Of a DNA stretch of 64,000 bases, positions 16,312 to 63,833 are shown piece after piece. Numbering within the stretch: the stretch's first letter is position 1; the number at the start of each line of letters is the position of its first letter. A program made the position numbers and the translations under genes. The notes under the pieces were generated by a model. The model saw nothing but the letters and a program-made list of their open reading frames with translations. It did not search any database and was not told the DNA's origin. The stretch covers positions 62,001 to 126,000 of IMG/VR virus record IMGVR_UViG_3300041411_000129; one strand, 5' to 3'.

Positions 16312-19300
16312 ATGTCTGAAATGTTAAATCAAGACGTTTATTACAGACAGTTTAGTTTGTGGCGGCAATCGGAGATCAATGCTCCTAAGTTGTATCCGAT
16401 TGCCAAACTCTGTCTGCCGAAGTTGGCGATCTTGCATTACGCCAATGTTGACGGTGTGTCCGTAGGTCCTCAAGCGTCTGACCAGATCTTTCTGACTCGT
16501 CAGGCACTCCTGTACATCGATCACATGCGTCGCTATGTCGATCCGATTGGGAACCCTGTGAAGACCCTCAGCAACATCGAGGGTATGATCACTGAGTACC
16601 GCCGTCGGAACCGTGCGTTTCGTCCTATGCGTAAGCTGGAGCGCTTAGAGACTGATAAACAGTCGCTGATCGTCTTCAACTATTCCATGTTGGCGCACAT
16701 CGTCAAGTATTCGGCATCATTCCGCGCTTCGTACTTCATGTGGTACAACATCTACCACGAAGTTATTCTGAACATGAACCATTTGGCAAAGGTTAGTAAC
16801 CGCCAACAATTCATCGAGATTGACCTCCCTGATGTCATCCCTCCTCTCGCTGCATTGCGTGAGTATCAGAGTAACCTCACCGCACAGACGCTGGCTAAGT
16901 TCCGCACACCTGAAGCTAAGCTCCTGGCTGACCTCTTCATGTGGGCTGGTCCTGAACGCTCCAAGAGTCTGTTCGGTAAACTGGAGTACGACAACCTCAG
17001 CAAAATCAACTTGATCGTTCGTCGTTTGAATGGCTGGGTGGTGATCAACCTCGGTTGGTTGGATTCGTTCCGTTCTGAGAAGAACCTTCCTGCGGACACA
17101 GATCCAAAGGAAAAGAAGCAGCGTGAGAAAGGTGAAGAACCAAAGACCTTTGCTCTGCGCTTCCTGAAGCTCATGACCACGATCCATCAAGGTACTACTC
17201 CTATCGCCACTGAAACTGGCGACGCTGTACTGGAAGAGCCTCTGGTTGAAGTTAACCCAGATGACGCGAAGATCGACTCGCAAGACTTCGACCTCGAAGA
17301 CGAGATGACCGCACTGGGTGATTCCAATCAGCTGATGGACGACGACGTTGAACTCTCCAAGCTTGAGAAAGAACTGGAAGAGCTCGACAAGCTGAAGGAC
17401 ATGTACGCCACTTCCGAACAAGTCGACGAAGAAGGTGACCTGATTGAACAGAAGGTTATCAACGTTGACCTCATGGCCCAGAAAGCAGGTGTCGCCAAAG
17501 AAGGCGAGGCAATGCTCAACAAGGCCGATGAGTTGTACGGCAAGGGGTTGCTTACCCAAGGTGAGTATCGTCGCTTAGAGCGCCTCTCAACCGTCTACGA
17601 GACACTCCCTAACCCCTACGGTGGTGAAGGTAGCTTCGTTGACGCGATGAAGATCACTCGTGAAGATGTTTTGGTCGATCCTAAAGAGTTGACCAACGAT
17701 TCCGTGGTGACCGATAAGTCGCTGGCATTTAGCCGTGTGGATGCTGTTGATCAGAAGTACATCAAGTCTGTACTGAAGAAAGACATCATGCGTGCTGTGT
17801 CTTCGATGCAGAAGGGCGCCGTAGCGATTACGAGTTACGTGGTTGATCGTAAGATCGATGCCGTGAACGATCGTGAGATGCACATCGTCAAGTTTGCGCC
17901 GGCTGTGGGTGTTCCTTCCACGGTTAAGTTCGAGCTTCCGACTATTCGTGAAGATGGCACGTTCCTGTATAACGGTACTGAATACCGCATGCGGAAACAG
18001 CGTTCCGACTTGCCGATCCGTAAGGTAGGTCCTAACCGAGTGGCGCTCTCCAGCTACTACTCGAAGATCTTCGTTGAACGGTCGAACCGTAAGAAGTTCG
18101 ATTACGGCAAATGGCTGTTGGGTCAACTGACTGTTAAATGTCTTGATCCAGACGATCCGCACATCAGCAACGCTGTACTGTCTGATGCAACCAACTTCAA
18201 AGCTGACGTACCGATGGTCTACTCGACTATCGCCGGTAGCATTGCTGGATTCACGGTTGATAAGCTGGATCTGTACTTCGATTACAAACACCGGATCAAG
18301 AAGTTCAACTACACCAAGGAAGAACTGTCGCTCGAGAAAGGCGGCTACGTTCTCTGTGGTCGTTCCAAGATGGGTCCGCTGGTCATGGCGCCTAACGGCA
18401 TGATCTACGTTCATTGGAAGAATGAGCTGCAAGACCTGGGTACGGTTGAGTCTCTGTGCGGTATCGAGATTGGTCCTGATTCGACGCCGATGTACATGGC
18501 TGAGATGAAGATCTACTCGAAGACCATTCCGGTAGGCTTTGCACTGGCTTACCTGTTGGGTATCGACGAACTGCTGAAAGTGCTTAACGTCGTTCCACGA
18601 CGCGCATTGGTTGGCGAACGTCTGAACCTTCAGGCTGATGAGTACGCAATCCGCTTTAAGAACGAATCGCTGATCTTCAAGCGCAGCGACGTAATGGCGG
18701 GTATGTTGCTCAGTGGCTTTAACCTTTACCATTCCGTCATCCGGAACTACGACATTGAACTGTTTAACGACAGGGATGTGTACGCTGCTGTACTTGAGCG
18801 TAGTGGTGTAGGTTCGCGCTATGTTCGTGAGTTGGATGCGTTGAACACTTTGTTCATCGACCCGATTACTCAGGACCTGCTCGAATGGATGAAAGAACCT
18901 ACGACCTTTACTGGTCTTCTGGTTCGTGCTACAGAGATGCTCCAAACCAACATGGTGCGTGTGCGCCGTGAAGATAAGGATCGTCTGGTAGAAGGTCTGG
19001 AAAGGGTTCGTGGTTACGAACGTGTGGCGGGTGTGGTTTACGAGACACTCTCGAAGGCTATCCGTTCTTACACTACTCGTTCGGCTACTGGCCGGGCATC
19101 TGTGGTGGTTAACCCGAACGACACCATCAACGCGCTGGTGCAAGATCCAACCACATCTCCAGTAAACAACATCAACCCGATCCACAGTCTGCGGGAACGG
19201 GAAGTTATCACCTTTGGTGGTCGTGGTGGTCGTAGCCGTCGTGCGATGGTTGCAAACACCCGTCTGTTTACTGATGAAGACATGGGCTTTATCTCGGAAG

Positions 19301-20586
19301 GTACGGTTGACTCCGGTGACGTGGCAATCATCACCTATCTGTCTCCGAACTCCAACCTGACCTCTGTACGTGGTACGGTTCGGATGTACGACGCAGAACG
19401 GGATGGTGCATCTGCATTGTTCTCTACCGCAGGCTTGCTCAGTTTCGGTGCGGACGGCGATGACCCTAAACGTCTGAACTTCATTCAAGTACAACACGGT
19501 CACGGTATCATGACTGTGGGGTCGGAAGTTCAAGGCGCTCGTACCGGCATGGAGCGAGTTATCGCTTCTCGGATGAGTCCTGAGTTTGCTGTTACCGCGA
19601 AGCAAGATGGCGAGGTTACTGAGATCGCCGCTGATGCAATCACCGTTACCATGAAGGACGGTACTACTGCTAAGTATCCGCTTGGATTGGTTCACACGAC
19701 TGCCGAAGGTTCTGTCTATCCGAACACCATCGCCACTACCCTTAAGGTTGGTGAGAAGGTCAAGGAGTTCGACGTCATTACCTACAACCAAGGCTTCTTC
19801 AAACCAAGCCTGTTGGACAAGCGTCGCGTTGACTACATGAACGGTTGCATTGGTCGCATCGCACTTCGTGAAGCCACGTATACCGTAGAAGACAGTAGCT
19901 CCATCTCTGTTGATTTCGCCAAACGTATGGGTACTTACGTTAGTAAGCTCAAGACGATTGTAGTCGACTTCCATGACGGCATTAGTGGGTTGGTTAAGGT
20001 GGGTGATAAGACTGACCTTGACACAATTCTATGCACGATTGAAGGCGCGGTTTCGTCTGCTGCCGGGCTTTATGACGACGCTACGCGGGAGACACTCCGT
20101 AACTGGGCAGCGATGACGCCTAAGGCTAAGGCCGTGGGTGAGGTTGCCAAGGTCGAGGTCTTTTACAACGGTGAGATCGACTCGATGTCCGACAGCCTGA
20201 TGGAAATCGTGGCTGATTCGGAGAAAGAGCGCAAACGCTCTGCCAAACGTCTGGGTAAGGAATACGTTCCTGCTCGCGTAGGACGCAACGTTCGTATCGA
20301 CGGACACACGCTTGAAGACCGTCAGGCAATCATCATGATTTACATCACCACCCCGGTGGGAATGGGCATCGGCGATAAGCTGGTAATTGCCAACCAGATG
20401 AAGTCTACAGTCGGTGAAATCCTCATCGGTAGCAACCGGACACTTGAGGGTGAGTTCATCGACGCGATCTTCGGTGCCAAGTCGGTTATTGACCGGATCG
20501 TAACAAGTCCGTTCGATATCGGAACGACCAATACCGTCCTGCGGTTTATCGGTGAAGAAGCATACGCCGATTACTTTGGCGAGTAA
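16312..20586 (+). CDS. virion RNA polymerase beta-like subunit, large N-terminal part (phiKZ gp178-like)
   Basis: 1424 aa; GTFLYNG, EGTVDSGDV, EDSSSIS and GDKLVIANQMKST (equivalent to RpoB GDKxxxRHGxKG). Confidence 0.92.
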   Translation: MSEMLNQDVYYRQFSLWRQSEINAPKLYPIAKLCLPKLAILHYANVDGVSVGPQASDQIFLTRQALLYIDHMRRYVDPIGNPVKTLSNIEGMITEYRRRNRAFRPMRKLERLETDKQSLIVFNYSMLAHIVKYSASFRASYFMWYNIYHEVILNMNHLAKVSNRQQFIEIDLPDVIPPLAALREYQSNLTAQTLAKFRTPEAKLLADLFMWAGPERSKSLFGKLEYDNLSKINLIVRRLNGWVVINLGWLDSFRSEKNLPADTDPKEKKQREKGEEPKTFALRFLKLMTTIHQGTTPIATETGDAVLEEPLVEVNPDDAKIDSQDFDLEDEMTALGDSNQLMDDDVELSKLEKELEELDKLKDMYATSEQVDEEGDLIEQKVINVDLMAQKAGVAKEGEAMLNKADELYGKGLLTQGEYRRLERLSTVYETLPNPYGGEGSFVDAMKITREDVLVDPKELTNDSVVTDKSLAFSRVDAVDQKYIKSVLKKDIMRAVSSMQKGAVAITSYVVDRKIDAVNDREMHIVKFAPAVGVPSTVKFELPTIREDGTFLYNGTEYRMRKQRSDLPIRKVGPNRVALSSYYSKIFVERSNRKKFDYGKWLLGQLTVKCLDPDDPHISNAVLSDATNFKADVPMVYSTIAGSIAGFTVDKLDLYFDYKHRIKKFNYTKEELSLEKGGYVLCGRSKMGPLVMAPNGMIYVHWKNELQDLGTVESLCGIEIGPDSTPMYMAEMKIYSKTIPVGFALAYLLGIDELLKVLNVVPRRALVGERLNLQADEYAIRFKNESLIFKRSDVMAGMLLSGFNLYHSVIRNYDIELFNDRDVYAAVLERSGVGSRYVRELDALNTLFIDPITQDLLEWMKEPTTFTGLLVRATEMLQTNMVRVRREDKDRLVEGLERVRGYERVAGVVYETLSKAIRSYTTRSATGRASVVVNPNDTINALVQDPTTSPVNNINPIHSLREREVITFGGRGGRSRRAMVANTRLFTDEDMGFISEGTVDSGDVAIITYLSPNSNLTSVRGTVRMYDAERDGASALFSTAGLLSFGADGDDPKRLNFIQVQHGHGIMTVGSEVQGARTGMERVIASRMSPEFAVTAKQDGEVTEIAADAITVTMKDGTTAKYPLGLVHTTAEGSVYPNTIATTLKVGEKVKEFDVITYNQGFFKPSLLDKRRVDYMNGCIGRIALREATYTVEDSSSISVDFAKRMGTYVSKLKTIVVDFHDGISGLVKVGDKTDLDTILCTIEGAVSSAAGLYDDATRETLRNWAAMTPKAKAVGEVAKVEVFYNGEIDSMSDSLMEIVADSEKERKRSAKRLGKEYVPARVGRNVRIDGHTLEDRQAIIMIYITTPVGMGIGDKLVIANQMKSTVGEILIGSNRTLEGEFIDAIFGAKSVIDRIVTSPFDIGTTNTVLRFIGEEAYADYFGE

Positions 20587-29547: not shown

Positions 29548-29621
29548 AGTGCTATCTCTTTTAGTACTTCACGGTATAAAGCCTGGACTCAACCTTTCGG
29601 AAGAGTCCAGGAGTAACGGTG

Positions 29622-30482
29622 TTACGGAGTTACCAACGAGCCTTTGATCGCATTGATCTGCTCGGTGAAACCCGTTGCAACGGCCGATACGTTGGAATCA
29701 ACGCCGGTGACGAAGTTGGCCTGGTACTGTGGGTCCATACCGCTTACGCGGACGGCATCCATGAAGCCCTGAGCCAATTTGTCAACTGCGTAACCAACCT
29801 TCTGCCAGCCAGTCCAGGACAGGTTGTAGGTGGCAAGCTCACCATCCTGCTGAAGCTGACGGTTACCGATGTTCTCACCAATTTCCTGATGGAGCCAGAA
29901 GTTGGTGATCAGCCAGGAGTTCTCGACGTAACGGAAAGTCTTGTCGGGCTCGAAGGCGATGATGGTGCCGCCGTACACGTCCGCCAGCTGGTCAGTGAAT
30001 CGATCACTTACACCAGTGAGGAGTGGATGGCCGGTATCCGGGTCCATGAACAGGTAACGCACCATGTCTTCCATGAAGCGCATGATTGGACGACGATCCT
30101 TGTCCACCACAGTGGAGGTGATCTGCGACCGCGCACGCGATACACGGGATGGGGTCTGGAAGACCTCACCGGCGTTACCCAGCTGAGTTTCCTGGGTGTT
30201 AACAGTCAGGGTACGGTTGAAGCCGTTCCAGGACTGCATCCAGTTTTCGATGAAGTTCTTGTAGGCAGCTACGTACAGCTGCCCATTAGGAAGCATCATC
30301 AGACCGGCGGGCGCTTGCAGCACTTTGATGATCAACGGTTTACGGATGTAGTCCGTAGCCGATGGGTAGTACTGCATGTCGGTCAGGTAGCCTTGTTGGC
30401 CCTGTACCGCCATGTTCAGCACTGTCATCTGAGCGCGTTCGGCGTACGCCTTATTGGTCAGAGTATCTGCATACCGTCCCAT
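29622..30482 (-). CDS. tail tube protein (phiKZ gp30-like)
   Basis: 286 aa directly downstream of the sheath; strongly optimised codons. Confidence 0.8.
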   Translation of the reverse strand: MGRYADTLTNKAYAERAQMTVLNMAVQGQQGYLTDMQYYPSATDYIRKPLIIKVLQAPAGLMMLPNGQLYVAAYKNFIENWMQSWNGFNRTLTVNTQETQLGNAGEVFQTPSRVSRARSQITSTVVDKDRRPIMRFMEDMVRYLFMDPDTGHPLLTGVSDRFTDQLADVYGGTIIAFEPDKTFRYVENSWLITNFWLHQEIGENIGNRQLQQDGELATYNLSWTGWQKVGYAVDKLAQGFMDAVRVSGMDPQYQANFVTGVDSNVSAVATGFTEQINAIKGSLVTP

Positions 30483-30485
30483 TTA

Positions 30486-32552
30486 TTAAGTCTCCGAAGA
30501 ACGACGGTTTTGCGCGATGATCGCCAGGTTCTCAACGGTGCGAGCGTTGTCACCAGCCATCTCGATATTCAGGTGCCACGAGAAGTTGCTCTGAGTATCG
30601 AACGCATCGAAATAAGCGTCCGGAGTCACGTCGACGCGGCCGTCGTACTTACCAGCAGTACGAGCGGTAACCTTGTCGTTTACCATGTCCAGGAACTGCT
30701 CATCGGTGAGCTGCGAATCACCGGACATTTCACGCCAGGTGATGTGCCCGATCCGCGTCAGGTTGCACGCGATGCACACGTTGATGTACGCATGCAGAAT
30801 CGAGGTTTGCTCTTCGTAGATCGACTGGATGCCGGCCCAGAAGAGGCGGCCCATATCGAAGTACTCGGCGTAGTTCATCCCGTTGTCCCAGTCGACCTGA
30901 CGCACTTCAGGCTCTTGGGTCACGACGTTGTGGTCGCGATAACGAGTGATGGTGTTCTGCTCACCACGGCCGAACGATTTCTCGTTCTTCATCTCACCAC
31001 CTTCAGCGCCCATGTACTCGGTGCCGAGGATCAAGATGTATTCCAGGAATGGAACGATGCCGTCGTACAGATCGTCGATCAGATAACCAGCCTGACCGAA
31101 TACGCAGAAGCGCAGCGCCTTGGTGCCGAACTCGGACGATTCTTGCTGCGCACGGAAGTGCGAACGCAGGGTGATAGCAATCGAGGAGTCTTGCGCCGGA
31201 GTGTTCAGCGGCTTCATCACGTCCTGGGTGCAGGTGTGAACGTAGACGTCTGGACGCGCGGTGTGGAATGCCGAGAACTTCAGCTTGGTGGCAACCGGGA
31301 AACCCGAATCCCAGACGGAGTCGTACGGCATGCGTGCGATGTCTTTGTATGGGACGCCATTGCTGCTGAGGTCGGTCAGGACGGTGTCCATCACGGCGTT
31401 GAAGCTGTCGTTACCCAGTTCACCGTCTGCGCCGCCAGTCATCCACAGGTTGGACAGTTCGCCCAAGAGGATGCCGCCGTCAGCAGGACCTTCAATGACG
31501 AAGGTATGGTAAGGGTTGCCGTTGATGTCGGTGCCTGTCAGGAAGTTGAACAGGTTGACATCTTTGAACTCTTCGGTGGTGTAATCCGACTCGGCCGTAG
31601 CCAGAGTGGTCAACAGCGCCTGGATGTTCGCATCGTAGAACGCGAACTTCTCGCAAGGACCCCAACCGGTGAAGGCTTGTGGATTGCTTGCTTCGTAGTT
31701 CTTCTTGATAACCTTTCCACCGTAGTACTCGGTGGAGGTCGCCAAGTCGATCGTGCCTTTCTTGAACGAGAAGTCCAGGAATGGCTGGCTACGCAGCGTG
31801 CGCTGCAAAGTAGCGGTCGAAGACTTGTTGGCGCGGTTCACGAACTGAACGCGATAGAGTCGAGCGCCCAGAGTGTCGGCCAGATCTTCATCAGCAGGCT
31901 GCTGCGACTTGGTAGTCGGAGCGATCAGACGCAGACCGATGTTGTTACCCTTCTCGCCTTCGAAGCGAGCCAGGCCGTCCCAGATTGGGATCTCTTTCGA
32001 GACCGCACCGTCGACGGTGGAAACCAGCAGGCCTTCTGCTTCAGCAGCAGCGCCGAAGGTCGATTCGCCTTGAGCGGTTTTGCTAACAGGCTTCCAGCGC
32101 CATTGAGCGCGGTGACCGGTTGCAGTTTCGCCAGTAGGAATCTTGGCGCCTTGGGCATCGAGCTTCAGGCTACCGTCGGTGTTCCGCTCGTAGAGAGGAA
32201 TCAGGTCTTCGACGACATCGAGAGCCAGGCGGAAGGACGCTTGTGCAGCACCCGGCGCAGGCAGACGAACGAAGATCGCTTTACCGGAAGCTTCGAAATG
32301 GCTACGGATGAACTGCGATTGGTGAGTGAAGAACGGAGACAATGGGTCCGTTACACCCGAACCGAACAGCAGGCTCAAGCCCGAGTCGTTTACGTAGCGA
32401 CCGTTACCGTACTCACCCCAAGGTGCGAACGATTGGAACAAAGGAAGACGAATCGGAAGGTTCTCGACCGGAAGGGTCAAGTTCGTTACCGTCTCGTCCT
32501 TAACGCCCCGGAACTCAGTCCGTGGCACGGAACTCAAACGACTTACAGACAT
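30486..32552 (-). CDS. contractile tail sheath protein (phiKZ gp29-like)
   Basis: 688 aa; PFFTHQ, GGADG and WDSGF motifs typical of phiKZ-like sheaths; paired with the tube gene. Confidence 0.85.
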   Translation of the reverse strand: MSVSRLSSVPRTEFRGVKDETVTNLTLPVENLPIRLPLFQSFAPWGEYGNGRYVNDSGLSLLFGSGVTDPLSPFFTHQSQFIRSHFEASGKAIFVRLPAPGAAQASFRLALDVVEDLIPLYERNTDGSLKLDAQGAKIPTGETATGHRAQWRWKPVSKTAQGESTFGAAAEAEGLLVSTVDGAVSKEIPIWDGLARFEGEKGNNIGLRLIAPTTKSQQPADEDLADTLGARLYRVQFVNRANKSSTATLQRTLRSQPFLDFSFKKGTIDLATSTEYYGGKVIKKNYEASNPQAFTGWGPCEKFAFYDANIQALLTTLATAESDYTTEEFKDVNLFNFLTGTDINGNPYHTFVIEGPADGGILLGELSNLWMTGGADGELGNDSFNAVMDTVLTDLSSNGVPYKDIARMPYDSVWDSGFPVATKLKFSAFHTARPDVYVHTCTQDVMKPLNTPAQDSSIAITLRSHFRAQQESSEFGTKALRFCVFGQAGYLIDDLYDGIVPFLEYILILGTEYMGAEGGEMKNEKSFGRGEQNTITRYRDHNVVTQEPEVRQVDWDNGMNYAEYFDMGRLFWAGIQSIYEEQTSILHAYINVCIACNLTRIGHITWREMSGDSQLTDEQFLDMVNDKVTARTAGKYDGRVDVTPDAYFDAFDTQSNFSWHLNIEMAGDNARTVENLAIIAQNRRSSET

Positions 32553-32705
32553 GTTGTACTCCCAGGAGCTAGTTCTGCGCAGAACTTCGAGGAATGGTAT
32601 GGTCAGCGAACTTCAGCCGAAACGCCGAAGTAAGCATACTATTTTTATTCCCGCTTTATGCAAACGAATGTAACTTTTAACTCACATAAGTAGGAGACGC
32701 GAACA

Positions 32706-42962: not shown

Positions 42963-43514
42963 ATGCCCTTAAGATCTGAACGCGATAAACTGCTACTCCT
43001 CTACATCTCTTCTGATGTTCCGATCATCACTCTCGAGAACTACGAGAAGTGGTACAACATCTACGTCGTTTTCCCAGGTGACGTAGTAGAGACAGTTCCA
43101 GGTGATCTCGTGATGGAAGCTTCTGGAAATGATGGCTTGTGGGTTGACCATGACTATCACCCTCAACTACTGCACAACTTGGCCAAGATCTACTGCGGTC
43201 AAGTCGATCATCTGGCTCTAGAAGTGGCCGCTGGTCGCTGGGTTCTTTCTGGTCATGGCAGTATCGGCGATACAGGCTACATTGTCGATCAGGAAGTTGA
43301 AGACACGATGTTCGAAGCCGCCGATGATACTTCGTTCGAGATGGAACGTAACGTTCGTTGCCATTGCTGCGTCAAAGTAGCACGGGAGCAGTTCAAGGTT
43401 TCCCGTCGGATCGATCCTGTCGGTGAGCACAAGCTGTTCCGCTTCTGCGGTGAACACCTCAAGGAGTTCAACGAACACCGTTTCAACTGGATCTCTAAAC
43501 ATTACAACGGCTGA
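42963..43514 (+). CDS. hypothetical protein with C-terminal Cys/His finger
   Basis: GGAG RBS; CHCC...FCGEH. Confidence 0.75.
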   Translation: MPLRSERDKLLLLYISSDVPIITLENYEKWYNIYVVFPGDVVETVPGDLVMEASGNDGLWVDHDYHPQLLHNLAKIYCGQVDHLALEVAAGRWVLSGHGSIGDTGYIVDQEVEDTMFEAADDTSFEMERNVRCHCCVKVAREQFKVSRRIDPVGEHKLFRFCGEHLKEFNEHRFNWISKHYNG

Positions 43515-43524
43515 GGAAGTCACG

Positions 43525-44256
43525 ATGTTCACTATTACAGCGCTGCACGTTATCGAAGAATTGGGCCCTAAGTTCAGTGAGTTCCTGAAGAAGAACCAAC
43601 TGATTGAGTTTGTCACCGACCCTACTGGCTATCTGGATGAGAAGACCGTTATCGGTACTATCTTCACTTTGGCTTATGGCAATGGTGTCCACTCGGCGCA
43701 GTTCGAAGAATGTAGTAAGCGCCTTGTTTCATTGTTGGGTGGCCATGTGCCTGAAGAACTGGTCGATGAGATCCTTTCGCAGGCACTGGGTTATCGGGAT
43801 AGAGCTCAACTTCGTTCTAAGGCTGTAAAGCTGAAGTTCAAGTCGAGAACGTATTACTACCCGAGCGTTTGGCGTCACGGGATGACTGGCCGGAAACAAA
43901 TCTTCGAGCCGGACTCCATTGCTCCAATCGACGTAAAGGTTAAGGTCATCGATTACTGGTCTCTGTTCCTAGAGCGAGGCTACGACATTCAACCAGCGAC
44001 TTACTACACTCCGGTCGACTACATGGTGAAGGTGGCATTCCACTATAACCAATGCCGTAAGACCTTGAAAGAGTGTGCGCGGGATATGCAGATCCTGTCG
44101 TCTGGTCAATTGACCCTCGGTGACTCTTACCGACTCCTAGCTAAGGCGATGGGGTACGAATCTTGGTATCACGCTAAGGTGTCGTCTGCTCCTGACGAAC
44201 ATATCGAAAACCTGAGAAACCCACGTCCCTCTATCGGCGATTACGCCCAACTTTAA
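43525..44256 (+). CDS. hypothetical protein with a duplicated small helical domain
   Basis: GAGGA RBS; two copies of ECxxx(L/M)xxLxxG...(I/L)LxxA(L/M)GY. Confidence 0.75.
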   Translation: MFTITALHVIEELGPKFSEFLKKNQLIEFVTDPTGYLDEKTVIGTIFTLAYGNGVHSAQFEECSKRLVSLLGGHVPEELVDEILSQALGYRDRAQLRSKAVKLKFKSRTYYYPSVWRHGMTGRKQIFEPDSIAPIDVKVKVIDYWSLFLERGYDIQPATYYTPVDYMVKVAFHYNQCRKTLKECARDMQILSSGQLTLGDSYRLLAKAMGYESWYHAKVSSAPDEHIENLRNPRPSIGDYAQL

Positions 44257-44676: not shown

Positions 44677-46155
44677 ATGACTATCCGCGAAGAAGTTATC
44701 GCTTTGAAACCAACAACAACCGAACGTGAAGTTCCTACCCGTATCTTCGGCGAAGCTGAAGTGCGTCAGACGTACATCGACAAGGCTAAGTACGAGAGTG
44801 CTGGTCGAGGTTCTTTCAATCCGTTATTGTCGCTGATTGGACCTAATGCTGACTTCGATGGTAATGCCTTGAATATAAAACCGGGGCAACTAGAGCAAGT
44901 GCTCTTTACACGAGGTTACGCTACAGATATAAATTCCGACATCTCTCTCACTCCAGATGCGTTCGCTGATTATCAGCGGTTTATGGCTGAGTCACAAACA
45001 GCGATGGTTCTCGAGACAGGTGACGCGACTAAAGCCCTGATCATGGAGAACAAACCGCTGGACGAGAGCGAATACTTCAACCGTAAAATGTTGGCTAAGG
45101 CTGAAGCGGTTGAGCAACGTATCTTGAAGTTGATGGAAGAAGGGATGACTCGTGTTGAGGCTACTCAAGTAGTTGCTTATAACGCAGATCAGCTCAACAA
45201 AATGCGCCAGAAAGAATGGCGCGCACACGTCAACGGTTATGAACTCTTTGGTCCTGATGATCCTAATCGCCGGCCTATTAAGGACCCGACATCTTACGAT
45301 GACGATCTGATCGCTCGTCAATACCGTGATCCACTCTTTAAGGTCCGAGCTATTGAGGATCACATCGAGAGCATCATGATGTTCAAAGATCCTGGTTGGG
45401 AAGCTCGGATTATCCGTCTGCGTAAAGAACAAGCGATGTTGATGGCGCCGGTTGCAGAACCTGTAGTCGCTGAACCGGAAGAGCCACCACCTCCACCGCC
45501 TATTCTGGACTTCACCACCGGTGATCTGGAAATGCCTGAGCGATTCATCATCAAGGATCTCAAAGGCTTCGAGTTCAATCCAGATACCAAGTTCGATGGT
45601 CTGCGCCTGCCTTACGATTCCTGCCTGTTTGTATTGGGTGATGAACTGAAGGCTGTTGTTCTGGCTACTCAAGAAGATGAGGACGTAATCACTCTGAAGC
45701 TTCTATCTGAGACCAAGAAGGATATCCCTTGGCACGCCACTGCAACGCTGTACGCGCGTCTTCAAGGCGATAAGGTTAAGGTTCGTTGGGGTAACACTAA
45801 ACGCAGCCTGGATAAGCGTTTGGGTATGGTGTCTTCTGTTCTTGCCTTCATCGCTGGTGAGCAGCTTAGTGAAGTTGAGATTGAAACCGTTATCACCGCC
45901 CCTGAGCAAGATGTTCCTCCACCTAAGCCTGGCAACTGCTACAATGTGGTTAGTCTGGTGCAAGGTCGTCGCGGTAAACGCACTGACTGGAAAGGTGGCA
46001 CTCACGCCTCTCCTCGCGAACACAAACGTAAAGGTCACTGGTGGCCTGGCAAACACGGTCCTATCTGGATCAAGGCTACTATCGTGAACAAAGGCGTTCT
46101 CGGTAAAGTCGATAAAGAATATCACGTCACTAAACTTGAAGGAACAAACGCATGA
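44677..46155 (+). CDS. multidomain early protein with an RNAP active-site-like peptide (PNADFDGN) and a C-terminal SPRxHxRxGHW domain
   Basis: 492 aa; motif at 44845-44865; poly-Pro linker; basic His-rich C-terminus. Confidence 0.8.
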   Translation: MTIREEVIALKPTTTEREVPTRIFGEAEVRQTYIDKAKYESAGRGSFNPLLSLIGPNADFDGNALNIKPGQLEQVLFTRGYATDINSDISLTPDAFADYQRFMAESQTAMVLETGDATKALIMENKPLDESEYFNRKMLAKAEAVEQRILKLMEEGMTRVEATQVVAYNADQLNKMRQKEWRAHVNGYELFGPDDPNRRPIKDPTSYDDDLIARQYRDPLFKVRAIEDHIESIMMFKDPGWEARIIRLRKEQAMLMAPVAEPVVAEPEEPPPPPPILDFTTGDLEMPERFIIKDLKGFEFNPDTKFDGLRLPYDSCLFVLGDELKAVVLATQEDEDVITLKLLSETKKDIPWHATATLYARLQGDKVKVRWGNTKRSLDKRLGMVSSVLAFIAGEQLSEVEIETVITAPEQDVPPPKPGNCYNVVSLVQGRRGKRTDWKGGTHASPREHKRKGHWWPGKHGPIWIKATIVNKGVLGKVDKEYHVTKLEGTNA

Positions 46156-47296: not shown

Positions 47297-47298
47297 GA

Positions 47299-47337
47299 GT
47301 AGCCTCCCTTCGGGGAGGTTGCTTCATTCTTTTTTTT
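47299..47337 (+). terminator. intrinsic terminator
   Basis: GTAGCCTCCC-TTCG-GGGAGGTTGC plus a T run. Confidence 0.85.
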
Positions 47338-55708: not shown

Positions 55709-55768
55709 GTTTTGTTGAAAGATACAAACCGTACTAACAATACGTAGAGTACCTCAGAGGTTTGATTG

Positions 55769-57898
55769 ATGGCTAACGATAACCCGTTCCTCTTACCAGT
55801 AGAGGAATACAAACGTGACATCGATGTCAAGAAAGGCTATATCCAACAAGTAGCCAAGTATCTTTCACTTCAGCTCAAACTCCCTTACGAGAACACGCTG
55901 AAGTACGTCCTTAAGAAAGTAGCTAAGGGCGGCATGTTTGCATTCAAAGATCCTGCAATGCAGCAGTTGATCAAGAAAGCACGCGGTCACCGAGTTGAGG
56001 ATGAAACTACCTTCCTCGGTTACATCGAAGAGATTCGTGAGTCTGGTCGTATTGTTTCCCCATCGCTGGTGGTTTACGAGCGTCCAGAAGTAGAACGTTC
56101 CGTTACAGCTGAATGGCTGGACGATAACATCGCGGCTCGTAAGAAGTCGAAGAAAGCGATGTTTGAATTGAAACAGATCGGTGAACTGATGAAGTCTGCG
56201 CTTGCGGACTATGACCAGAACGCCCGTAAGATCCGTATCAACTCCGTATCCGGTATGCGTGGCTTTGAAGGTAACCCAATCTTCTTGGCAACCGGTCACT
56301 CCAGTCTGACATCCATGTGCCGGGCAGCAGCGGGGTACGGTAACGCCACTGTTGAAAGATTCATGGCGGGGTCGAAGCATTACCATACGCCAGAGATAGC
56401 CAAAGCCAACTTGACGGCCATCACGACTATCGAACAGATGAGTCGGGTTCAGTTGGTGATTGACGAATACAACCTCGTGTATCCAACTGTGGATGACGTG
56501 GTAGCCATGGTTGAGCGTTCTACCAGTCTGTACTGGGATATCCCTCACGAGATGGCTTTGATCCGTCAGATGGCAGAAGGGATGACTCCACTGGAGCGTG
56601 CCACCGTTTGCTACTCGGGTGACATGTACCACTTGGCTAAGTTCAACCCTGAAGTTGTTAAGAACCTGATGGGTGAGATGATTGCCATCAATATCGAAGA
56701 CATGGAAGACGTTGATACTGACGCCATCTTGATGACTGTCGATACCACGGCCATCGCTTACATCAACGCCCTGTGCGCAAACATCCTGAAAGGTAGTACG
56801 CACAAGCTGGTTAAAGAGAATAACCCGGCAGGTTGGCAGGTTATCGGTCGTACAGCACAACGCTTTAAAGAAGCCTCTGCGAAGTACGCAACCCTGATCA
56901 CTAACCTATTTGCGCCTAAGCATCTTCCGCCGACTGTAGCCGCTCTCAAGGGCATTCAGCGCCGTGTATGTCTGGCAGCAGATACCGACTCCTCCATCTT
57001 CAGTACCGAATACTGGGTTGAGTGGTATACCGGCAGCATGAAGCGTGGGGAAGTAGAGGACCGTATCTGGTATCTCGCCACCTACATGTCTTGCCAGTGC
57101 ATTGCGCACAGTCTGGCAATGTTGTCGGCAAACGTCGGTGTGGAGCGTTCGCAACTCTTCCGTCTGGCAATGAAGAATGAGTACGCCTTCCCGGTGTTTG
57201 CTCTGACCAACCTTGCTAAGCACTACTTCTCCTTCATGTCCATGCGGGAAGGTAACGTTTACGAAGAGAACGAGCTGGAGATCAAGGGTGTAGAGCTGCG
57301 CGGTTCTACTGCACCTAAGCATATCTTGAAAGCGGCTGAGGAGATGATGGAGAACATCGCTACTCACGTCAACGAAGGTCGGAAGATGAATGCGGGTAAA
57401 CTCCTGCGGTTCGTTGCCGATCACGAGATTGAAACGATCCAGTCCATTAAGCGTGGGGAATACAAATACCTGCGTTCCGCTCAGATCAAGCCGGACAGTA
57501 ACAAGATGCTTCACCACGTACTGTGGCAAGAAGTGTTTGCTCCTAAGTACGGCGAGTCTGTTAATCCTCCGTATCCATGTGTTAAGATCACTTCCGAGCT
57601 GTCTAACAAGACGAAGACTCAGGAATGGTTGGCGGGTATGGAAGATCAGGAGCTGGCCAAGCGAATGGCTGCGTGGATGGTCAAGTGGAACCGTAAAGAG
57701 ATCACTACCTTCTATCTACCAACCATGGTGATCAAGAACGGTGGTCTTCCTATCGAACTACAGGAAGCTGCAAACGTCCGGAAGTTGGCCTATCAGATCA
57801 ACTCAGGCTTCTACAGGATCTTGGAGTCTACTGGTCTTCATCTGGTGGATCGGAATAACTACCGTCTGATCTACGATTTCTTGGGACTCACTGCATGA
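55769..57898 (+). CDS. family-B DNA polymerase, polymerase subunit (phiKZ gp50-like)
   Basis: Motif B QNARKIRINSVSG, motif C ADTDSSIF, KHY and IKGVEL. Confidence 0.88.
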   Translation: MANDNPFLLPVEEYKRDIDVKKGYIQQVAKYLSLQLKLPYENTLKYVLKKVAKGGMFAFKDPAMQQLIKKARGHRVEDETTFLGYIEEIRESGRIVSPSLVVYERPEVERSVTAEWLDDNIAARKKSKKAMFELKQIGELMKSALADYDQNARKIRINSVSGMRGFEGNPIFLATGHSSLTSMCRAAAGYGNATVERFMAGSKHYHTPEIAKANLTAITTIEQMSRVQLVIDEYNLVYPTVDDVVAMVERSTSLYWDIPHEMALIRQMAEGMTPLERATVCYSGDMYHLAKFNPEVVKNLMGEMIAINIEDMEDVDTDAILMTVDTTAIAYINALCANILKGSTHKLVKENNPAGWQVIGRTAQRFKEASAKYATLITNLFAPKHLPPTVAALKGIQRRVCLAADTDSSIFSTEYWVEWYTGSMKRGEVEDRIWYLATYMSCQCIAHSLAMLSANVGVERSQLFRLAMKNEYAFPVFALTNLAKHYFSFMSMREGNVYEENELEIKGVELRGSTAPKHILKAAEEMMENIATHVNEGRKMNAGKLLRFVADHEIETIQSIKRGEYKYLRSAQIKPDSNKMLHHVLWQEVFAPKYGESVNPPYPCVKITSELSNKTKTQEWLAGMEDQELAKRMAAWMVKWNRKEITTFYLPTMVIKNGGLPIELQEAANVRKLAYQINSGFYRILESTGLHLVDRNNYRLIYDFLGLTA

Positions 57899-60002: not shown

Positions 60003-60243
60003 CGTAGTGAATATAACCAGTGGATAAGGAAAGTCGAAGTGATCTAAGTAAAAAGTCACACAGCAACAGAATCTTAAGACCCGTAGCGTAAAGCCGGTTT
60101 AGTGCAACCGGTTCAAGCCCGTGCTATTCACGACGGTGGGTATTGCCGGGAATCCCTGATAGCGATAAGGGTAATAGTACCGTAATTGCCAGTTAGGCAC
60201 CATCGCAATAAATGTGTACACAAAATCTTTAGGAGTAGCACCA

Positions 60244-62262
60244 GTGAGCAAAGAAAACGGTAACGACGGCTTCGAAATGAAAGATGACGCCCCAGCCCCA
60301 CGCGCCGAAGCTCCAGCATCTGAGCGCCGTGAAGAACGTCGCGAAGAGCCACGTCGTGAAGAACGCAATACCCGCCGCGATCGCGATGAGCGTGAAGAAG
60401 GCGAAGAACGTGCGTTCACGATTGCGGACATCGGCCGTACCCTGAACGTCCGTCCATCCAGCGGTGGCCTGAGCGATGCTGCTCTGTCCGCACTCATGGC
60501 TGCGTTCGAGAAGAACAAGGCGTTCGACAAACCGAACCTGCCTGATGCAATCAAGCGCGACCGCTTCAAAGTGATTCCGCTGGACGGCTCCCTGGCCAAG
60601 TCCTCGCTGAACTCGCTGCTGGTAACTCTGCCAATCGTCATCGGCGCTGGCAAGGCAACTCTGGTTTACGTTCTGACCATCGAACCGGCCGGTGGCCACG
60701 GTACTCGCAGTCAGGTCGATCGCGGCACCACTTACGATGCGATCGTTCTGCCTGAAGACCAACTGGCTACCAAGCCGTACAAACGCGCCATCGAAGATCA
60801 GGTCTCCGGCCTGAACAAAGATGCCAAGGTTGTGGTGATCGGTTCGCAGGTTCTGCTGTCGTCGGTTGTAGCGAAGCTGAACAAAGAAGAAAACAGCGCC
60901 GTCGTCGATCGTATCTTCGACAACGCCCTGGATGCACTGTGCGGCTACCGCGAAAACCTGGTCGACAAGGCCGGTGGTTCCCGCAACAGCGCCTTCCGCA
61001 TCAGCCCGAAAATGATCGGCCGCACTGGCCGTCTGGAAACCACCTGGAACTACAGCGGTCAACCGGGCGAAGATAGCTCGGGTCAGCCGATCCGTTCCGA
61101 CTGCACCGGTAACCTGTTCTACAGCGAAGCCAGCAACGAAGACGATAACCAGTACGACCGTACCCCAATGGGCGAAATCCGTGCAGGTATCGACCTCTTC
61201 CTGGCCGACAACCGTGAACAGTCCAGCGGTCCATCCTTCTCGCGTCGCCGCAAGTCGCAAGAAGAAGGCGAACCGTTCATCCAGGCCGTTCTGAACATCA
61301 CCTCGATCGCTCCAGCGCCGAACTTCCCGTTCTCTCTGGAACTGGCACTGCTGCTGTTGGCTCAGGCCAACCTGCAATCGAACGACTACCGCTGGGCTTC
61401 CCAGCTGCGTCCTCGCACTGCAATCAGCAACCCAGACGGCACCGGCGTGATGAAGCCTACCAGCAACATCAACTGCCTGCACCTGCTGAACCCGAACCGC
61501 GACTTTGCCAAGATCTTCGACGACGTGTCTCCGAACATGGACGACAACGATCTGAGCGATTACCTCGCGTTCACGGTCTTCCCGAAACTGGCCATCGGCA
61601 TGATGATCCCAAGCTCGGGCGAGAAGTCCTCGGTTCTGTCGATCTTCGAAAGCATCGCGACCACTCGCGATACCGACGTTGCTCGTCGCCACACCAAGAC
61701 GCTGTTCGAAGCTGCCGACGTTCTGTCGGGCAACCGCTTCAGCCGCGCCTACAAGGACCTGGCTGGTTCCACCGACGTAGCTCCAGTGCGTTCGATGGGT
61801 ACTCGTCAGCTGATCGGCACCTGGGTTGATAACCAAGGCAACGTGCGCGACCTGCGCGAATGGAACGTTCAGTCTCTCCTCACCGAAGTTGGCGAGAAGA
61901 ACATCGATCTGGTTACTGACTTCCAGTACACCTACGAGAACGATCGCAACACCGTGGACTTCTGCCTGGCAGAACGTCTGGGCTACCTCCAGAAGGTTGT
62001 TCCGGGCATCCGCGTTACCACCACCGCTCCGCTGCTGGGCTTCGAGCCCGACTTCCTCGAGGCGCTGTCGCGCTCCCTGGACGCAGCTGACATGTCGAGC
62101 TACATGACTGCCGAAGGTGGTCTGAACACTCGTCGTCACGTTGGTGGTAGCAACTGGTCGCAGCTGGCAACTTCCGACATCGGCATCAGCCGTCGTCGTG
62201 GTTCCGACCGCACCACCGCTGATCGTGGCCGTGGTGGTCTGTTCGACACCATCGACTACTAA
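60244..62262 (+). CDS. chmA: chimallin, major phage nuclear shell protein (phiKZ gp54-like)
   Basis: About 670 aa with strong codon optimisation; GQPIRSD motif; lies between the gp52-like gene and the nvRNAP beta-prime gene; GTG start after AGGAG. Confidence 0.88.
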   Translation: MSKENGNDGFEMKDDAPAPRAEAPASERREERREEPRREERNTRRDRDEREEGEERAFTIADIGRTLNVRPSSGGLSDAALSALMAAFEKNKAFDKPNLPDAIKRDRFKVIPLDGSLAKSSLNSLLVTLPIVIGAGKATLVYVLTIEPAGGHGTRSQVDRGTTYDAIVLPEDQLATKPYKRAIEDQVSGLNKDAKVVVIGSQVLLSSVVAKLNKEENSAVVDRIFDNALDALCGYRENLVDKAGGSRNSAFRISPKMIGRTGRLETTWNYSGQPGEDSSGQPIRSDCTGNLFYSEASNEDDNQYDRTPMGEIRAGIDLFLADNREQSSGPSFSRRRKSQEEGEPFIQAVLNITSIAPAPNFPFSLELALLLLAQANLQSNDYRWASQLRPRTAISNPDGTGVMKPTSNINCLHLLNPNRDFAKIFDDVSPNMDDNDLSDYLAFTVFPKLAIGMMIPSSGEKSSVLSIFESIATTRDTDVARRHTKTLFEAADVLSGNRFSRAYKDLAGSTDVAPVRSMGTRQLIGTWVDNQGNVRDLREWNVQSLLTEVGEKNIDLVTDFQYTYENDRNTVDFCLAERLGYLQKVVPGIRVTTTAPLLGFEPDFLEALSRSLDAADMSSYMTAEGGLNTRRHVGGSNWSQLATSDIGISRRRGSDRTTADRGRGGLFDTIDY

Positions 62263-62342: not shown

Positions 62343-63833
62343 ATGGATTTGATTAATTACGATATCTACGAGCCACGTCAGCGTTATCCGGGGCGTAAGG
62401 GTATCTATCCAGTCATTGAAGACTTCGACCTGATGTTCAAGAACTTGAGCATTAAGCCGATGTTGGCAAACGACCTGGATCTCGAAACAGATGAAGGTAA
62501 ACAGCGGTTCAACGATCTGGTCTACACCAAGTACGATGGTGACGTGTTCTCCAACGTGCCGGCGTGTCCATGCCGTAAGACTTCTGGTGGTAGCCGTATT
62601 CATGACAACTGTATTCACTGCGGTTATGAAGTACTGCCAATTACAGAGCAAACTATCGAACCTATCGTCTGGGTAAGGGCACCTGACGAAGTTCCTGGGT
62701 TCATCAACTTGACAATCTACCGGTTGCTCAAGGCCCGATTCACCAAGTCCTCATTCAGCGTCTTCGACTACATCCTTGATCCAAAGTACCGCCCTCCTAA
62801 GCTTAACAGCAAAGAAGAGCGTCTTATTGAAGCGATCGTACCTACTCGTGGGTTGGTCTACTTCCATAAGCACTTCGATGAGATCATGTCCAAGTTGTGC
62901 GCAATCAGGCACTTCGTAACAGCGGCCAAAGCTGCTAGCACGATGCGTTTCATTGATATCCACAAACACCTGATCTTCTGCCGCTACATGCCGTTCCCAT
63001 CCAAGATTGGTTTCATCGTCGAAGATGTGGGCGACCGTACGTACGTCGATCCAAAGATGGCACCCGCACTGGATGCGCTCATCTGTCTTGGCAAAGTAGC
63101 ATCGGCCAAGCGCATTTCTCTGTACGATCTTGAATCCCGGATCGCACGGTCAAGCAATAAGCTCTGCACCTATTACTCGGGTAACGAGCATCTCAAGATC
63201 TTTGACAAGAAAGGAGTATTGCGAAAACTGGTTTACGGTGTATCGCCGCACTTTACGTTCCGTACGGTAATCACCTCGAACCACAAACCTCACGATCACG
63301 AGTCTCTCGAGATTCCATGGGGTTCAGCAGTTCTGACGTTTAAGCTCCACATCGCGAACAAGCTACGGAAGGAGAAGTATACTCCTAACGAAATCTTGAC
63401 GCTGGTCTACGATAACGTTCTTCGGACGCACCACCGCATTGAGAAGATCTTCGACGAGCTGATCGCCGAATCTCCAGGCGGTCGAGGGATGATGGCAGGC
63501 TTTACGCGGTTCCCATCGCTTAAGCGTGGTTCTACGCAAGGCTTCTACATCGATACGATCAAACGCGATCCTACCCAATTGAGTACATCCATCTCTGTAT
63601 TGACGCTGGTAGCACCCAACGCCGACTTCGATGGTGACTACATGTCTGGACAATTGGCACTGGATAACGTGACAGCAAGGGCTTTCGAGCGCCTGAAACC
63701 AAGTACTGGGTTCATGGACCTCAAGAAGGTCTTCGGAGTGAGTAACCACGCAAACATACCTGCGCCGGTTATCTCTACAATCAACGCACGTATTGAGGAA
63801 GGAAACGACCTATCAGTACCCATGGGAGATTGA
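62343..63833 (+). CDS. non-virion RNA polymerase beta-prime-like catalytic subunit (phiKZ gp55/56.1-like)
   Basis: Zn finger CPC...CIHC, KKGVLRK, RFPSL and catalytic NADFDGD (63618-63638). Confidence 0.93.
   Translation: MDLINYDIYEPRQRYPGRKGIYPVIEDFDLMFKNLSIKPMLANDLDLETDEGKQRFNDLVYTKYDGDVFSNVPACPCRKTSGGSRIHDNCIHCGYEVLPITEQTIEPIVWVRAPDEVPGFINLTIYRLLKARFTKSSFSVFDYILDPKYRPPKLNSKEERLIEAIVPTRGLVYFHKHFDEIMSKLCAIRHFVTAAKAASTMRFIDIHKHLIFCRYMPFPSKIGFIVEDVGDRTYVDPKMAPALDALICLGKVASAKRISLYDLESRIARSSNKLCTYYSGNEHLKIFDKKGVLRKLVYGVSPHFTFRTVITSNHKPHDHESLEIPWGSAVLTFKLHIANKLRKEKYTPNEILTLVYDNVLRTHHRIEKIFDELIAESPGGRGMMAGFTRFPSLKRGSTQGFYIDTIKRDPTQLSTSISVLTLVAPNADFDGDYMSGQLALDNVTARAFERLKPSTGFMDLKKVFGVSNHANIPAPVISTINARIEEGNDLSVPMGD

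Follow-up and report, generated by a model that had tools for sequence, protein, structure and literature searches.

A jumbo-phage protein with a string of RNA-polymerase motifs N-terminal of a predicted AcrVA2-like domain

The question at this locus

Why would a jumbo phage keep an altered copy of the catalytic loop of its own RNA polymerase inside a protein that is not a polymerase subunit? The question is raised by a 64,000-nucleotide stretch of viral DNA (positions 62,001 to 126,000 of IMGVR_UViG_3300041411_000129, from now on referred to as the window), in which an earlier note based on the sequence alone pointed out such a loop within ORF 44677-46155 (+). The note read the ORF as an unrelated, early-expressed protein without further RNA polymerase (RNAP) character, and inferred a decoy for a host sensor, toxin or protease, or a regulator of RNAP assembly. 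We find that the observation itself is correct, while the interpretation is supported only in part.

An altered catalytic loop maintained at protein level

The ORF (P0003, 492 aa) encodes LSLIGPNADFDGN at 44827-44865, while the non-virion RNAP (nvRNAP) beta'-N gene encodes LTLVAPNADFDGD at 63600-63638, with NADFDGD at 63618-63638. Nine of 13 residues are identical and 30 of 39 nucleotides match, with synonymous differences at the P, N and A codons. Both peptides lie in long ORFs, the second of which (62343-63833 (+), 496 aa) is a phiKZ gp55-like nvRNAP beta'-N subunit (phrog_2987, E 1.6e-129; Pfam RNA_pol_Rpb1_2 is a weak hit) and represents the model for the copied loop. Pairwise BLASTP over 40 residues gives E 5e-5, but the decisive point against a chance match is that the motif recurs in 24 homologues. 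The DNA flanking the loop is not unusually similar (26/60 and 16/60 nt), indicating that this is not a recent gene conversion. Ongoing conversion was also rejected because the motif flanks do not track the resident RNAP in Noxifer.

The flagged copy spans aa 51-65 (44827-44871 (+), LSLIGPNADFDGNAL), and its third Mg-binding Asp is replaced by Asn. This replacement is a fixed family feature: among the 24 family members, NADFDG is followed by N (19), S (2), G (1) or D (2), so that the third Asp is replaced in 22 of 24, compared with 0 of 79 true beta'-N homologues carrying the motif. Retention of the motif and its conservation relative to its flanks had been named beforehand as a test of function, and both held. 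With dS of about 1, dN/dS is 0.03-0.14 in motif residues and 0.15-0.27 in the rest of the tail, supporting the note's suggestion that the peptide is maintained at protein level. The gene is under purifying selection along its whole length.

A predicted disordered tail of nvRNAP-derived segments

The claim that the rest of the protein has no RNAP character does not hold, and neither does the description of the protein as unrelated. Residues 1-140 form a predicted-disordered mosaic of at least five nvRNAP beta, beta'-N and beta'-C segments, each of which matches nvRNAP best and not the host enzyme or the virion RNAP (vRNAP). The first segment, aa 19-30 (44731-44766 (+), VPTRIFGEAEVR, including the beta-like PTRIFGEAEVR), is a copy of the nvRNAP beta-C motif, for which Erwinia phage RAY gp248 has NTPTRFGESELR and E. 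coli has QRFGEMEVWAL. Its best local alignment is to RAY nvRNAP beta subunit 2, residues 613-625, and the word GESE occurs in 19 of 36 N-terminal extensions. The second, aa 43-50 (44803-44826 (+), GRGSFNPL, within the beta'-N-like AGRGSFNPLL), looks like a contracted copy of the beta'-N segments 'PGGRGMM...F(G)R(N)P(T/S)L', the R-x-P-T-L-H element of the beta' barrel. It should be noted that evidence for this segment is weak: the alignment to residues 370-384 of the window beta'-N scores only 31, equivalent segments of homologues hit phrog_2943 'polymerase' at E 9e-6, and the comparison with three beta'-N sequences was made by eye. The NADFDGN loop follows directly. The longest segment, aa 67-139 (44875-45093 (+)), is contiguous and homologous to nvRNAP beta'-C from the F-loop (GQLEQVLFTRGYATDINSDI) to the start of the bridge helix (PLDESEYFNRKM; EYFNRK). 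Residues 67-146 hit the nvRNAP beta'-C profile phrog_3015 (E 3.7e-10) and align to beta' subunit 2 of Erwinia phage pEa_SNUABM_37 (BLASTP E 3e-16, about 80 aa, 30% identity). Within this segment E132, Y133, R136 and K137 are invariant in 25 homologues.

The motifs recur beyond this gene. A search with the ORF returned 23 homologues at E<=1e-3, and in 34 of the 167 superfamily proteins collected at least two kinds of RNAP motif are found N-terminal of the domain, in varying order and number, whereas about 130 short relatives have none. An unbiased 4-mer count of the N-terminal extensions was topped by EYFN/FNRK, NADF/DFDG/FDGN and GESE, making these the most conserved words of the region. In the AlphaFold2 (AF2) model of the full-length protein, aa 1-128 have pLDDT of about 30 and the tail docks on nothing, although the alignment was shallow.

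The homology to beta' is therefore detectable but local, and the region is derived from beta' without being a beta' subunit: the third of the three Mg-binding aspartates is not retained, no double-psi beta-barrel is predicted, no Pfam RNAP domain is found, and the motif order is not colinear with RNAP, differs among homologues and mixes beta with beta' pieces.

A C-terminal AcrVA2/FinQ-like module

The tail is followed by a helical region, aa 130-256 (45064-45444 (+), pLDDT 70-88), which may be the counterpart of the helical N-terminal domain of AcrVA2 (PMC10846135), although this correspondence is inferred. A Pro-rich linker (EEPPPPPPIL) at aa 257-277 (45445-45507 (+)) has low pLDDT at 259-268, and its PPPP word is conserved in the close clade. 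Residues 278-492 (45508-46152 (+)) are predicted to form an AcrVA2/FinQ-like module (Pfam PF26125), consisting of a beta/alpha body followed by a tail of short beta-strands. An AF2 model of this module based on 96 sequences has pLDDT 82.8 and pTM 0.80. A shape search of the ESM Atlas gave TM 0.71 over 204 aa to a cluster in which 46% of members carry PF26125, and 74 of the 100 nearest feature clusters carry PF26125. AcrVA2 itself (7ci1_A) ranked first of 48,161 PDB representatives, aligning over nearly its whole length (model 1-221 against chain 2-293), but the Z of 4.8 is weak on its own, and Foldseek against the PDB found nothing with either model.

The stretch that the note described as a basic SPREHKRKGHW domain is the conserved HxRxxH tail of this family. 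HKRKGH at aa 449-454 (46021-46038 (+)), 43 residues from the end, where the family has the motif about 35-45 residues from the C-terminus, is equivalent to AcrVA2 H286/R288/H291, which are required for mRNA down-regulation (Marino et al., 10.1101/2022.11.29.518452), and H449 and R451 are invariant in 25 homologues. Sequence searches of the PDB with ORF-family profiles and with single relatives returned no AcrVA2 hit, and the link had to be made through an annotated AcrVA2 orthologue: the family profile aligns to Shewanella phage Y11 ORF43 (hhalign E 2.6e-5), which in turn aligns to 7ci1_A (E 1.5e-72), with the HxRxxH residues aligned (AcrVA2 reads KRPHIRRGHW).

Pfam, NCBIfam and PHROGs searches with the whole protein and short relatives gave no informative family apart from the RNAP PHROG for the N-terminus. 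The Pfam copy used gave no PF26125 hit for any member even at E 10 and apparently lacks this model. Precomputed PF26125 hits exist for three relatives, P0025, P0056 (weak) and P0053 (faint). A profile of the module finds 2,975 relatives, and database names for the relatives we looked up are all 'hypothetical'.

Comparison with known systems

AcrVA2, an anti-CRISPR of a Moraxella bovoculi prophage (PDB 7CI1/7CI2), binds a conserved N-terminal peptide of nascent Cas12a and causes translation-dependent loss of its mRNA (10.1101/2022.11.29.518452), and its C-terminal part associates with ribosomes and polysomes (PMC13728456). The ORF shares with it the C-terminal motif P-R-x-H-x-R-R/K-G-H-W ... 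W ... V-N, the predicted arrangement of body and tail, and a location on a mobile element. However, sequence identity outside the tail motif is not directly detectable, and the ORF carries an extra N-terminal region of ~270 aa that contains RNAP-derived motifs, while AcrVA2 is not reported to carry pieces of its target. Marino et al. note that most homologues occur without Cas12a and propose that homologues on mobile elements, including megaphages, have other targets. As there is no Cas12a context here, an anti-CRISPR role is not implied and we do not classify the protein as an anti-CRISPR.

FinQ, a fertility-inhibition protein of I-complex plasmids named as an AcrVA2 homologue by Marino et al., is reported to lower the mRNA of a rival element's genes. 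A 350-aa protein on about 200 conjugative enterobacterial plasmids shares the C-terminal 70 aa with the ORF family (hhalign probability 95%, E 3.6e-8) and has no RNAP motifs. That this protein is FinQ is our inference from plasmid type and size, as the records call it hypothetical.

With the nvRNAP beta'/beta subunits of nucleus-forming jumbo phages (phiKZ gp55-type beta'-N; Erwinia phage RAY gp248/gp249) there is real local homology, namely the NADFDG loop with its flanks, the F-loop through the start of the bridge helix, and the GE-x-E-x-R and RMN motifs. The ORF differs by loss of the third Asp, retention of only the signature motifs, variable order, predicted disorder and fusion to an unrelated effector module. 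Eukaryotic TTC5-mediated tubulin autoregulation, an analogy drawn by Marino et al., relies on the same concept, recognition of a conserved N-terminal peptide on the nascent chain triggering decay of the mRNA being translated, but shares no homology, and the parallel is one of mechanism only, itself hypothetical for the ORF.

Proposed function

It is well supported that the gene encodes a jumbo-phage member of the AcrVA2/FinQ family, in which a complete AcrVA2-like module is preceded by a helical region and an intrinsically disordered tail of ~130 aa. The tail is a string of short segments copied long ago from nvRNAP core subunits: beta-C (GE-x-E-x-R; RMN in relatives), beta'-N (GRG/NP-x-L and the NADFDG loop) and beta'-C. 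NADFDGN is one bead on this string and not a catalytic site.

How the protein works is tentative. We hypothesize that, like AcrVA2, the C-terminal part sits on translating ribosomes and, when a specific nascent polypeptide is engaged, triggers loss of the mRNA being translated. The motif string would supply or gate specificity by presenting peptide elements that normally pack together around the nvRNAP active centre, so that it could engage nascent, unassembled nvRNAP subunits, either of a co-infecting or superinfecting rival jumbo phage or of the phage itself for dosage or timing control. Loss of the third Asp would keep the copy from binding Mg2+ and mark it as non-catalytic. The analysis itself establishes the nvRNAP origin of the segments, their recurrence and conservation, the predicted disorder, the Asp replacement and the AcrVA2-like nature of the module, whereas peptide binding, ribosome association and mRNA loss are inferred by analogy with AcrVA2, for which alone they have been described, and any link to nvRNAP synthesis is likewise inferred. 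Taken as a whole, we consider this account about as likely as not.

Several points weigh against the proposed mechanism. No experiment or prediction links the tail to any partner, and the one complex prediction, of the ORF with beta'-N, gave no answer and is not used as evidence either way. In the full-length model the tail docks on nothing, and the motif flanks do not track the resident RNAP in Noxifer. Similarity to the solved AcrVA2 structure is weak. Because the C-terminal module already aligns to nearly the whole of AcrVA2, it may have its own peptide-binding site, which would leave the tail with a regulatory or decoy role rather than a targeting role. Further, silencing nvRNAP would hit the phage's own essential enzyme unless timing or sequence differences protect it.

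In its boldest form, which is doubtful but not excluded, a subfamily of AcrVA2-like proteins in nucleus-forming jumbo phages would use a modular, reshuffleable string of motifs copied from the target complex, the nvRNAP active centre, as guide or bait, making it a peptide-programmed, co-translational silencer of a rival phage's, or its own, RNAP synthesis. This would be the first assigned target for an AcrVA2 homologue that is not an anti-CRISPR, and an example of specificity encoded by copies of target-derived motifs. AcrVA2 is so far the only bacterial-world example of a protein that silences a gene by reading its nascent polypeptide, and its roughly 2,000-3,000 homologues on mobile elements have no known targets. 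This subfamily points to nvRNAP as a directly testable candidate and, if confirmed, would reveal control of, or conflict over, the enzyme that makes nucleus-forming phages independent of their host. A disordered, shuffleable array of target-derived motifs fused to a generic effector may also be useful for designing polypeptide-specific gene regulation. Even if the mechanism is wrong, conservation of a de-activated catalytic loop and five other RNAP signature motifs as bare peptides is an unexplained and striking case of molecular mimicry.

Alternative explanations

Some kind of peptide-level mimicry of nvRNAP is the natural reading of a conserved motif in a predicted-disordered region, and to this extent the decoy idea of the earlier note is supported. 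In its closest surviving form, which we regard as possible but unlikely, the motif string is bait for a host or rival-element factor recognizing unfolded or nascent nvRNAP peptides, such as an AcrVA2/FinQ-like silencer on a prophage or plasmid, a protease or a sensor, while the C-terminus merely places the bait on polysomes, where the attack occurs. In favor of this view, several different motifs are kept as bare peptides, the catalytic Asp is dispensable, and the AcrVA2 superfamily is very large and lives on mobile elements in conflict with each other. However, the invariance of H449 and R451 and a C-domain dN/dS of 0-0.07 argue that the module keeps its own activity rather than serving as an anchor, and its identity points to co-translational mRNA control rather than a passive sponge. 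A stoichiometric sponge against co-translational attack would also need very high abundance, and no attacking factor is known. Regarding the early expression assumed in the note, a single general search of sequencing runs, which is not a dedicated search for RNA, listed only DNA runs of the rhizosphere metagenomes from which the phage comes, and early timing remains an assumption.

Somewhat less likely still is a pseudo-substrate or autoregulatory role, in which the module itself recognizes nvRNAP motifs and the copies in its own N-terminus either cause auto-inhibition by occupying the binding site in cis or make its own mRNA a target, limiting the level of a potentially self-harmful silencer. 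The module corresponds to almost the whole of AcrVA2 and should thus have its own peptide site, the motifs lie at the extreme N-terminus, where the motif recognized by AcrVA2 lies in Cas12a, and the D-to-N change could, by inference, tune affinity. On the other hand, one binding site would not need five or six different motifs to be conserved, and no docking of the tail is seen in the full-length model.

A recombination relic, consisting of leftover RNAP gene fragments fused by illegitimate recombination or a mobile-element insertion and without a function of their own, is largely refuted. The contiguous beta'-C piece and a sharp difference in dS between the two halves of the gene, which suggests a mosaic history, would fit, but the motifs persist across homologues whose C-domains are only about 30% identical while the linking sequence is deleted or shuffled, and the conservation, dN/dS and flanking DNA described above argue against it. 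A real RNAP part, be it a divergent extra beta'-like subunit, a minimal polymerase or an assembly factor built into the enzyme, is very unlikely despite local homology to segments surrounding the active centre, given the features listed above and the presence of complete vRNAP and nvRNAP genes of the usual kind. A nuclear-import tag was judged unlikely because nvRNAP appears to be imported as an assembled complex through Imp1/Imp7 (10.64898/2026.09.21.753271) and an AcrVA2-like ribosome-associated module would have no ribosomes inside the phage nucleus.

Genomic context

No near-identical DNA was found in sequenced phages. A conserved downstream partner was rejected, as the gene overlapping the stop codon is not homologous between the window clade and the Noxifer clade. 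In a tree of the C-domains the motif-bearing proteins fall into one group of 42 tips, which is suggestive only, as support is just 0.32 with midpoint rooting. A strong terminator-like hairpin at 47297-47324 (+), with a 12-bp stem containing 6 GC pairs and a T-run, identified as a consensus match only, probably ends the transcription unit that holds the gene and its two downstream neighbours.

The catalytic-loop-like peptide and its nvRNAP counterpart

Re-examination of the two peptides in the earlier note confirmed its observation. Window:44827-44865 reads LSLIGPNADFDGN and window:63600-63638 reads LTLVAPNADFDGD, with 9 of 13 residues and 30 of 39 nt being identical and the P, N and A codons differing synonymously. 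The first peptide is part of ORF 44677-46155 (492 aa, protein P0003) while the second is found in ORF 62343-63833, which encodes a non-virion RNAP (nvRNAP) beta'-N subunit (phrog_2987, E 1.6e-129) and is located directly downstream of the chimallin gene (60214-62262). The pairwise match alone is modest (BLASTP E 5e-5), and the flanking DNA is dissimilar; the match is therefore neither due to chance nor a recent copy, as the family data presented below show.

The window originates from a nucleus-forming jumbo phage. It carries a divergent family-B DNA polymerase (55766-57898), a tubulin-like gene and two adjacent virion-RNAP genes (14597-16291 and 16312-20586, together spanning 14597-20586), specifically, a beta'-N-like gene of 564 aa (phrog_2986, loop GLGADFDGDTGS) and a 1,424-aa subunit (phrog_3148) in which simple pattern searches found none of the usual beta signature motifs. 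No sequenced phage was found to be close at the DNA level, and the sequence occurs in rhizosphere metagenomes.

The N-terminal region is a string of nvRNAP-derived segments

The earlier note stated that the remainder of the protein lacks RNAP character, which did not hold. Residues 67-146 match the nvRNAP beta'-C profile phrog_3015 (E 3.7e-10) and residues 40-221 align to nvRNAP beta' subunit 2 of an Erwinia phage (E 3e-16), with the alignment running from the F-loop (GQLEQVLFTRGYATDINSDI against GQ..Q....RGYLTDHNSRI) to the start of the bridge helix (PLDESEYFNRKM against PLEDSEWFNRKM). Residues 19-30 (VPTRIFGEAEVR) match NTPTRFGESELR of RAY nvRNAP beta subunit 2. Relatives also carry RMNHGRLLE, which resembles beta ITKRMNLGKPTEQ and E. 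coli SRMNIGQILE. Further, GRGSFNPL (aa 43-50) looks like a contracted copy of the beta'-N "GGRG...R-x-P-T/S-L" elements, although this assignment is weak. For the GE-x-E, NADFDG, F-loop and bridge-helix segments, the best partner is an nvRNAP subunit and not E. coli RpoB/RpoC or the phage's own virion RNAP with its GLGADFDGDTGS loop, while the RMN segment, taken from relatives, scores about equally with E. coli RpoB and RAY nvRNAP beta. AlphaFold2 modeling yielded a pLDDT of about 30 for aa 1-128, followed by predicted helices at 130-256, a poly-Pro linker and a folded C-terminal domain.

A homology search identified 23 relatives while an exhaustive profile search with the C-terminal domain returned 2,975 representatives. 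Among 167 superfamily proteins examined, 34 carry at least two kinds of RNAP-like motif N-terminal of the domain, whereas about 130 shorter relatives carry none. The motif-bearing proteins group together on a C-domain tree, but with weak support. The motif string is not universal among jumbo-phage AcrVA2 homologues, as the isolated Pseudomonas phage pPa_SNUABM_DT01 (L016), which has the closest cultured beta'-N to the window (37% identity), encodes a short (297-aa) AcrVA2-like protein without any RNAP motifs (L016:1399-2292).

The order and number of motifs differ between homologues. The window ORF shows the order GExE, NP, NADFDG, F-loop, EYFNRK, while Noxifer gp262 shows NP, GExE, RMN, F-loop, EYFNRK, NADFDG. 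The homologue P0011 shows NP, RMN, F-loop, GExE, NADFDG, EYFNRK and the homologue P0022 EYFNRK, F-loop, NP, NADFDG. In the shorter members, the ~45 aa linking the F-loop and the bridge helix are deleted while the two motifs are kept. An unbiased 4-mer count over 36 N-terminal extensions is topped by EYFN/YFNR/FNRK (25-26 proteins), DFDG/ADFD/NADF/FDGN (20-24) and GESE (19). Among four close orthologues, dS is about 1 and dN/dS is 0.03-0.14 in motif residues compared with 0.15-0.27 in the rest of the tail. Loss of the motif in homologues, or conservation no higher than in its flanks, had been named beforehand as grounds for rejecting the proposal; instead, homologues retain the motif and it is more conserved than its flanks.

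The third aspartate of the loop is N in 19, S in 2, G in 1 and D in 2 of 24 family members, whereas all 79 nvRNAP beta'-N homologues that show the motif keep D. One exception to the D-to-N rule is P0038, a distant metagenomic family member of 545 aa, which keeps the full acidic triad (AADFDGDEL) and has two EYFN/EYLN-RK copies, showing that motifs can be duplicated.

The C-terminal domain is AcrVA2/FinQ-like

The region described in the earlier note as a basic SPREHKRKGHW domain is the most conserved part of the protein, with GGTHASPREH-x-R and VNKG being invariant. Several independent results identify aa ~278-492 as AcrVA2/FinQ-like (Pfam PF26125). Precomputed Pfam hits exist for the in-family homologue P0025 and for the short relatives P0056 and P0053, of which the latter two are weak and faint, respectively, while the Pfam version used for our own scans apparently lacks the model. 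Based on ESM-Atlas features, 74 of the 100 nearest clusters carry PF26125, with scores of 0.96-0.97. A structure model based on a 96-sequence alignment was of good quality (pLDDT 82.8, pTM 0.80) and its best Atlas shape match is a PF26125 cluster at TM 0.71 over 204 residues. In an unbiased scan of 48,161 PDB representatives, the top hit is the AcrVA2 crystal structure 7ci1_A, although at only Z 4.8. Direct profile searches of the PDB and Foldseek did not find AcrVA2, however, a sequence bridge could be established: the family profile aligns to the annotated AcrVA2 orthologue of Shewanella phage Y11 over the tail motif (hhalign E 2.6e-5), and that orthologue matches 7ci1_A at E 1.5e-72. The assignment thus rests on the convergence of these lines of evidence and not on one strong hit. 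The AcrVA2 sequence KRPHIRRGHW...WQPAVFVN corresponds to SPREHKRKGHW...WIKATIVN of the ORF, so that H449, R451 and H454 are the equivalents of AcrVA2 H286, R288 and H291. A 350-aa protein found on about 200 conjugative I-complex plasmids, which we take to be FinQ, shares the same tail.

AcrVA2 has been shown to bind a conserved N-terminal peptide (LSKT) of Cas12a and to cause translation-dependent loss of cas12a mRNA, independently of codons or promoter (Marino et al., 10.1101/2022.11.29.518452). The H286A, R288A and H291A mutations abolish down-regulation but not binding. Homologues are widespread on mobile elements, "including plasmids and megaphages", mostly without Cas12a, and the authors suggest that they have other targets. 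A 2026 summary reports that the C-terminal part of AcrVA2 associates with ribosomes and polysomes and that a cellular enzyme does the cutting (PMC13728456). AcrVA2-like proteins in huge phages were already noted in 2020 (PMC7162821). We found no paper that mentions NADFDGN or an RNAP-motif array.

Proposed function of the motif string

Our analysis establishes a complete AcrVA2-like module with its functional motif intact, preceded by a predicted-disordered string of nvRNAP signature peptides that is under purifying selection. By inference only, and by analogy with AcrVA2, the module would work as in AcrVA2 and the string would direct or gate it with respect to nvRNAP. In our preferred, still tentative version, the string presents the peptide elements that pack around the active centre, drawn from three of the four core polypeptides, and would in that way engage nascent, unassembled nvRNAP subunits, either those of a rival jumbo phage or the phage's own for dosage or timing control. 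The only interaction test carried out gave no answer. The copy found in Noxifer does not track the flanks of its own beta'-N, so the string follows its own consensus (NADFDGNAL) rather than mirroring the resident enzyme.

An alternative that appears unlikely but possible is a ribosome-tethered decoy against a factor that reads nvRNAP peptides, representing a refined form of the idea put forward in the earlier note. Somewhat less likely, the string may be a cis pseudo-substrate or autoregulatory element. A functionless relic is largely refuted by the motif conservation and dN/dS data, and a true RNAP part is refuted by the lost Asp, the predicted disorder and the shuffled order.

The interpretation of the earlier note therefore receives partial support: the mimicry is real and much more extensive than was seen, but the protein is neither unrelated to RNAP nor a simple sponge. 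It is an AcrVA2-family protein with a target-like motif array. This finding is of high interest because it nominates a target for an otherwise orphan and very large family.

Sequence divergence and genomic surroundings

Comparison of window:44677-46155 with L004, L011 and L012, the corresponding sequences of close phages, showed that synonymous divergence differs several-fold between the two halves of the gene among the four phages, with dS being 0.6-1.5 in the N-terminal and helical half and 0.15-0.27 in the AcrVA2-like domain. The nvRNAP beta'-N protein of the 255,742-bp relative is 100% identical to that of the window, while this ORF is only 87% identical. This suggests a mosaic or recombinant history, or fast evolution of the N-terminal half.

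A short perfect hairpin (tACGGCgtttatGCCGTa, window:44640-44657) lies in the 42-nt gap between the upstream gene and the start codon of the ORF. In both the window clade and the Noxifer clade, the gene downstream of the AcrVA2-like gene overlaps its stop codon by 4 nt (ATGA; window:46152-46781 and, in the homologous loci L003 and L005, L003:6345-7136 and L005:11230-12012). The downstream proteins of the two clades are nevertheless not recognisably homologous (23-25% identity in a forced alignment). Further upstream, two same-strand ORFs (window:42921-43514 and 43423-44256) overlap by about 90 nt as listed. In the relative L004, the second gene is called shorter (243 aa), so the GTG start at 43423 is probably too far upstream. 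Elsewhere in the window, a giant 2,243-aa ORF (7824-14555, minus strand) has tail-fibre (phrog_3201) and transglycosylase (phrog_4067) matches, while a 1,004-aa ORF (29619-32633, plus strand) without a PHROG family at E<=1e-3 represents an orphan large protein in a structural or RNAP-rich region.
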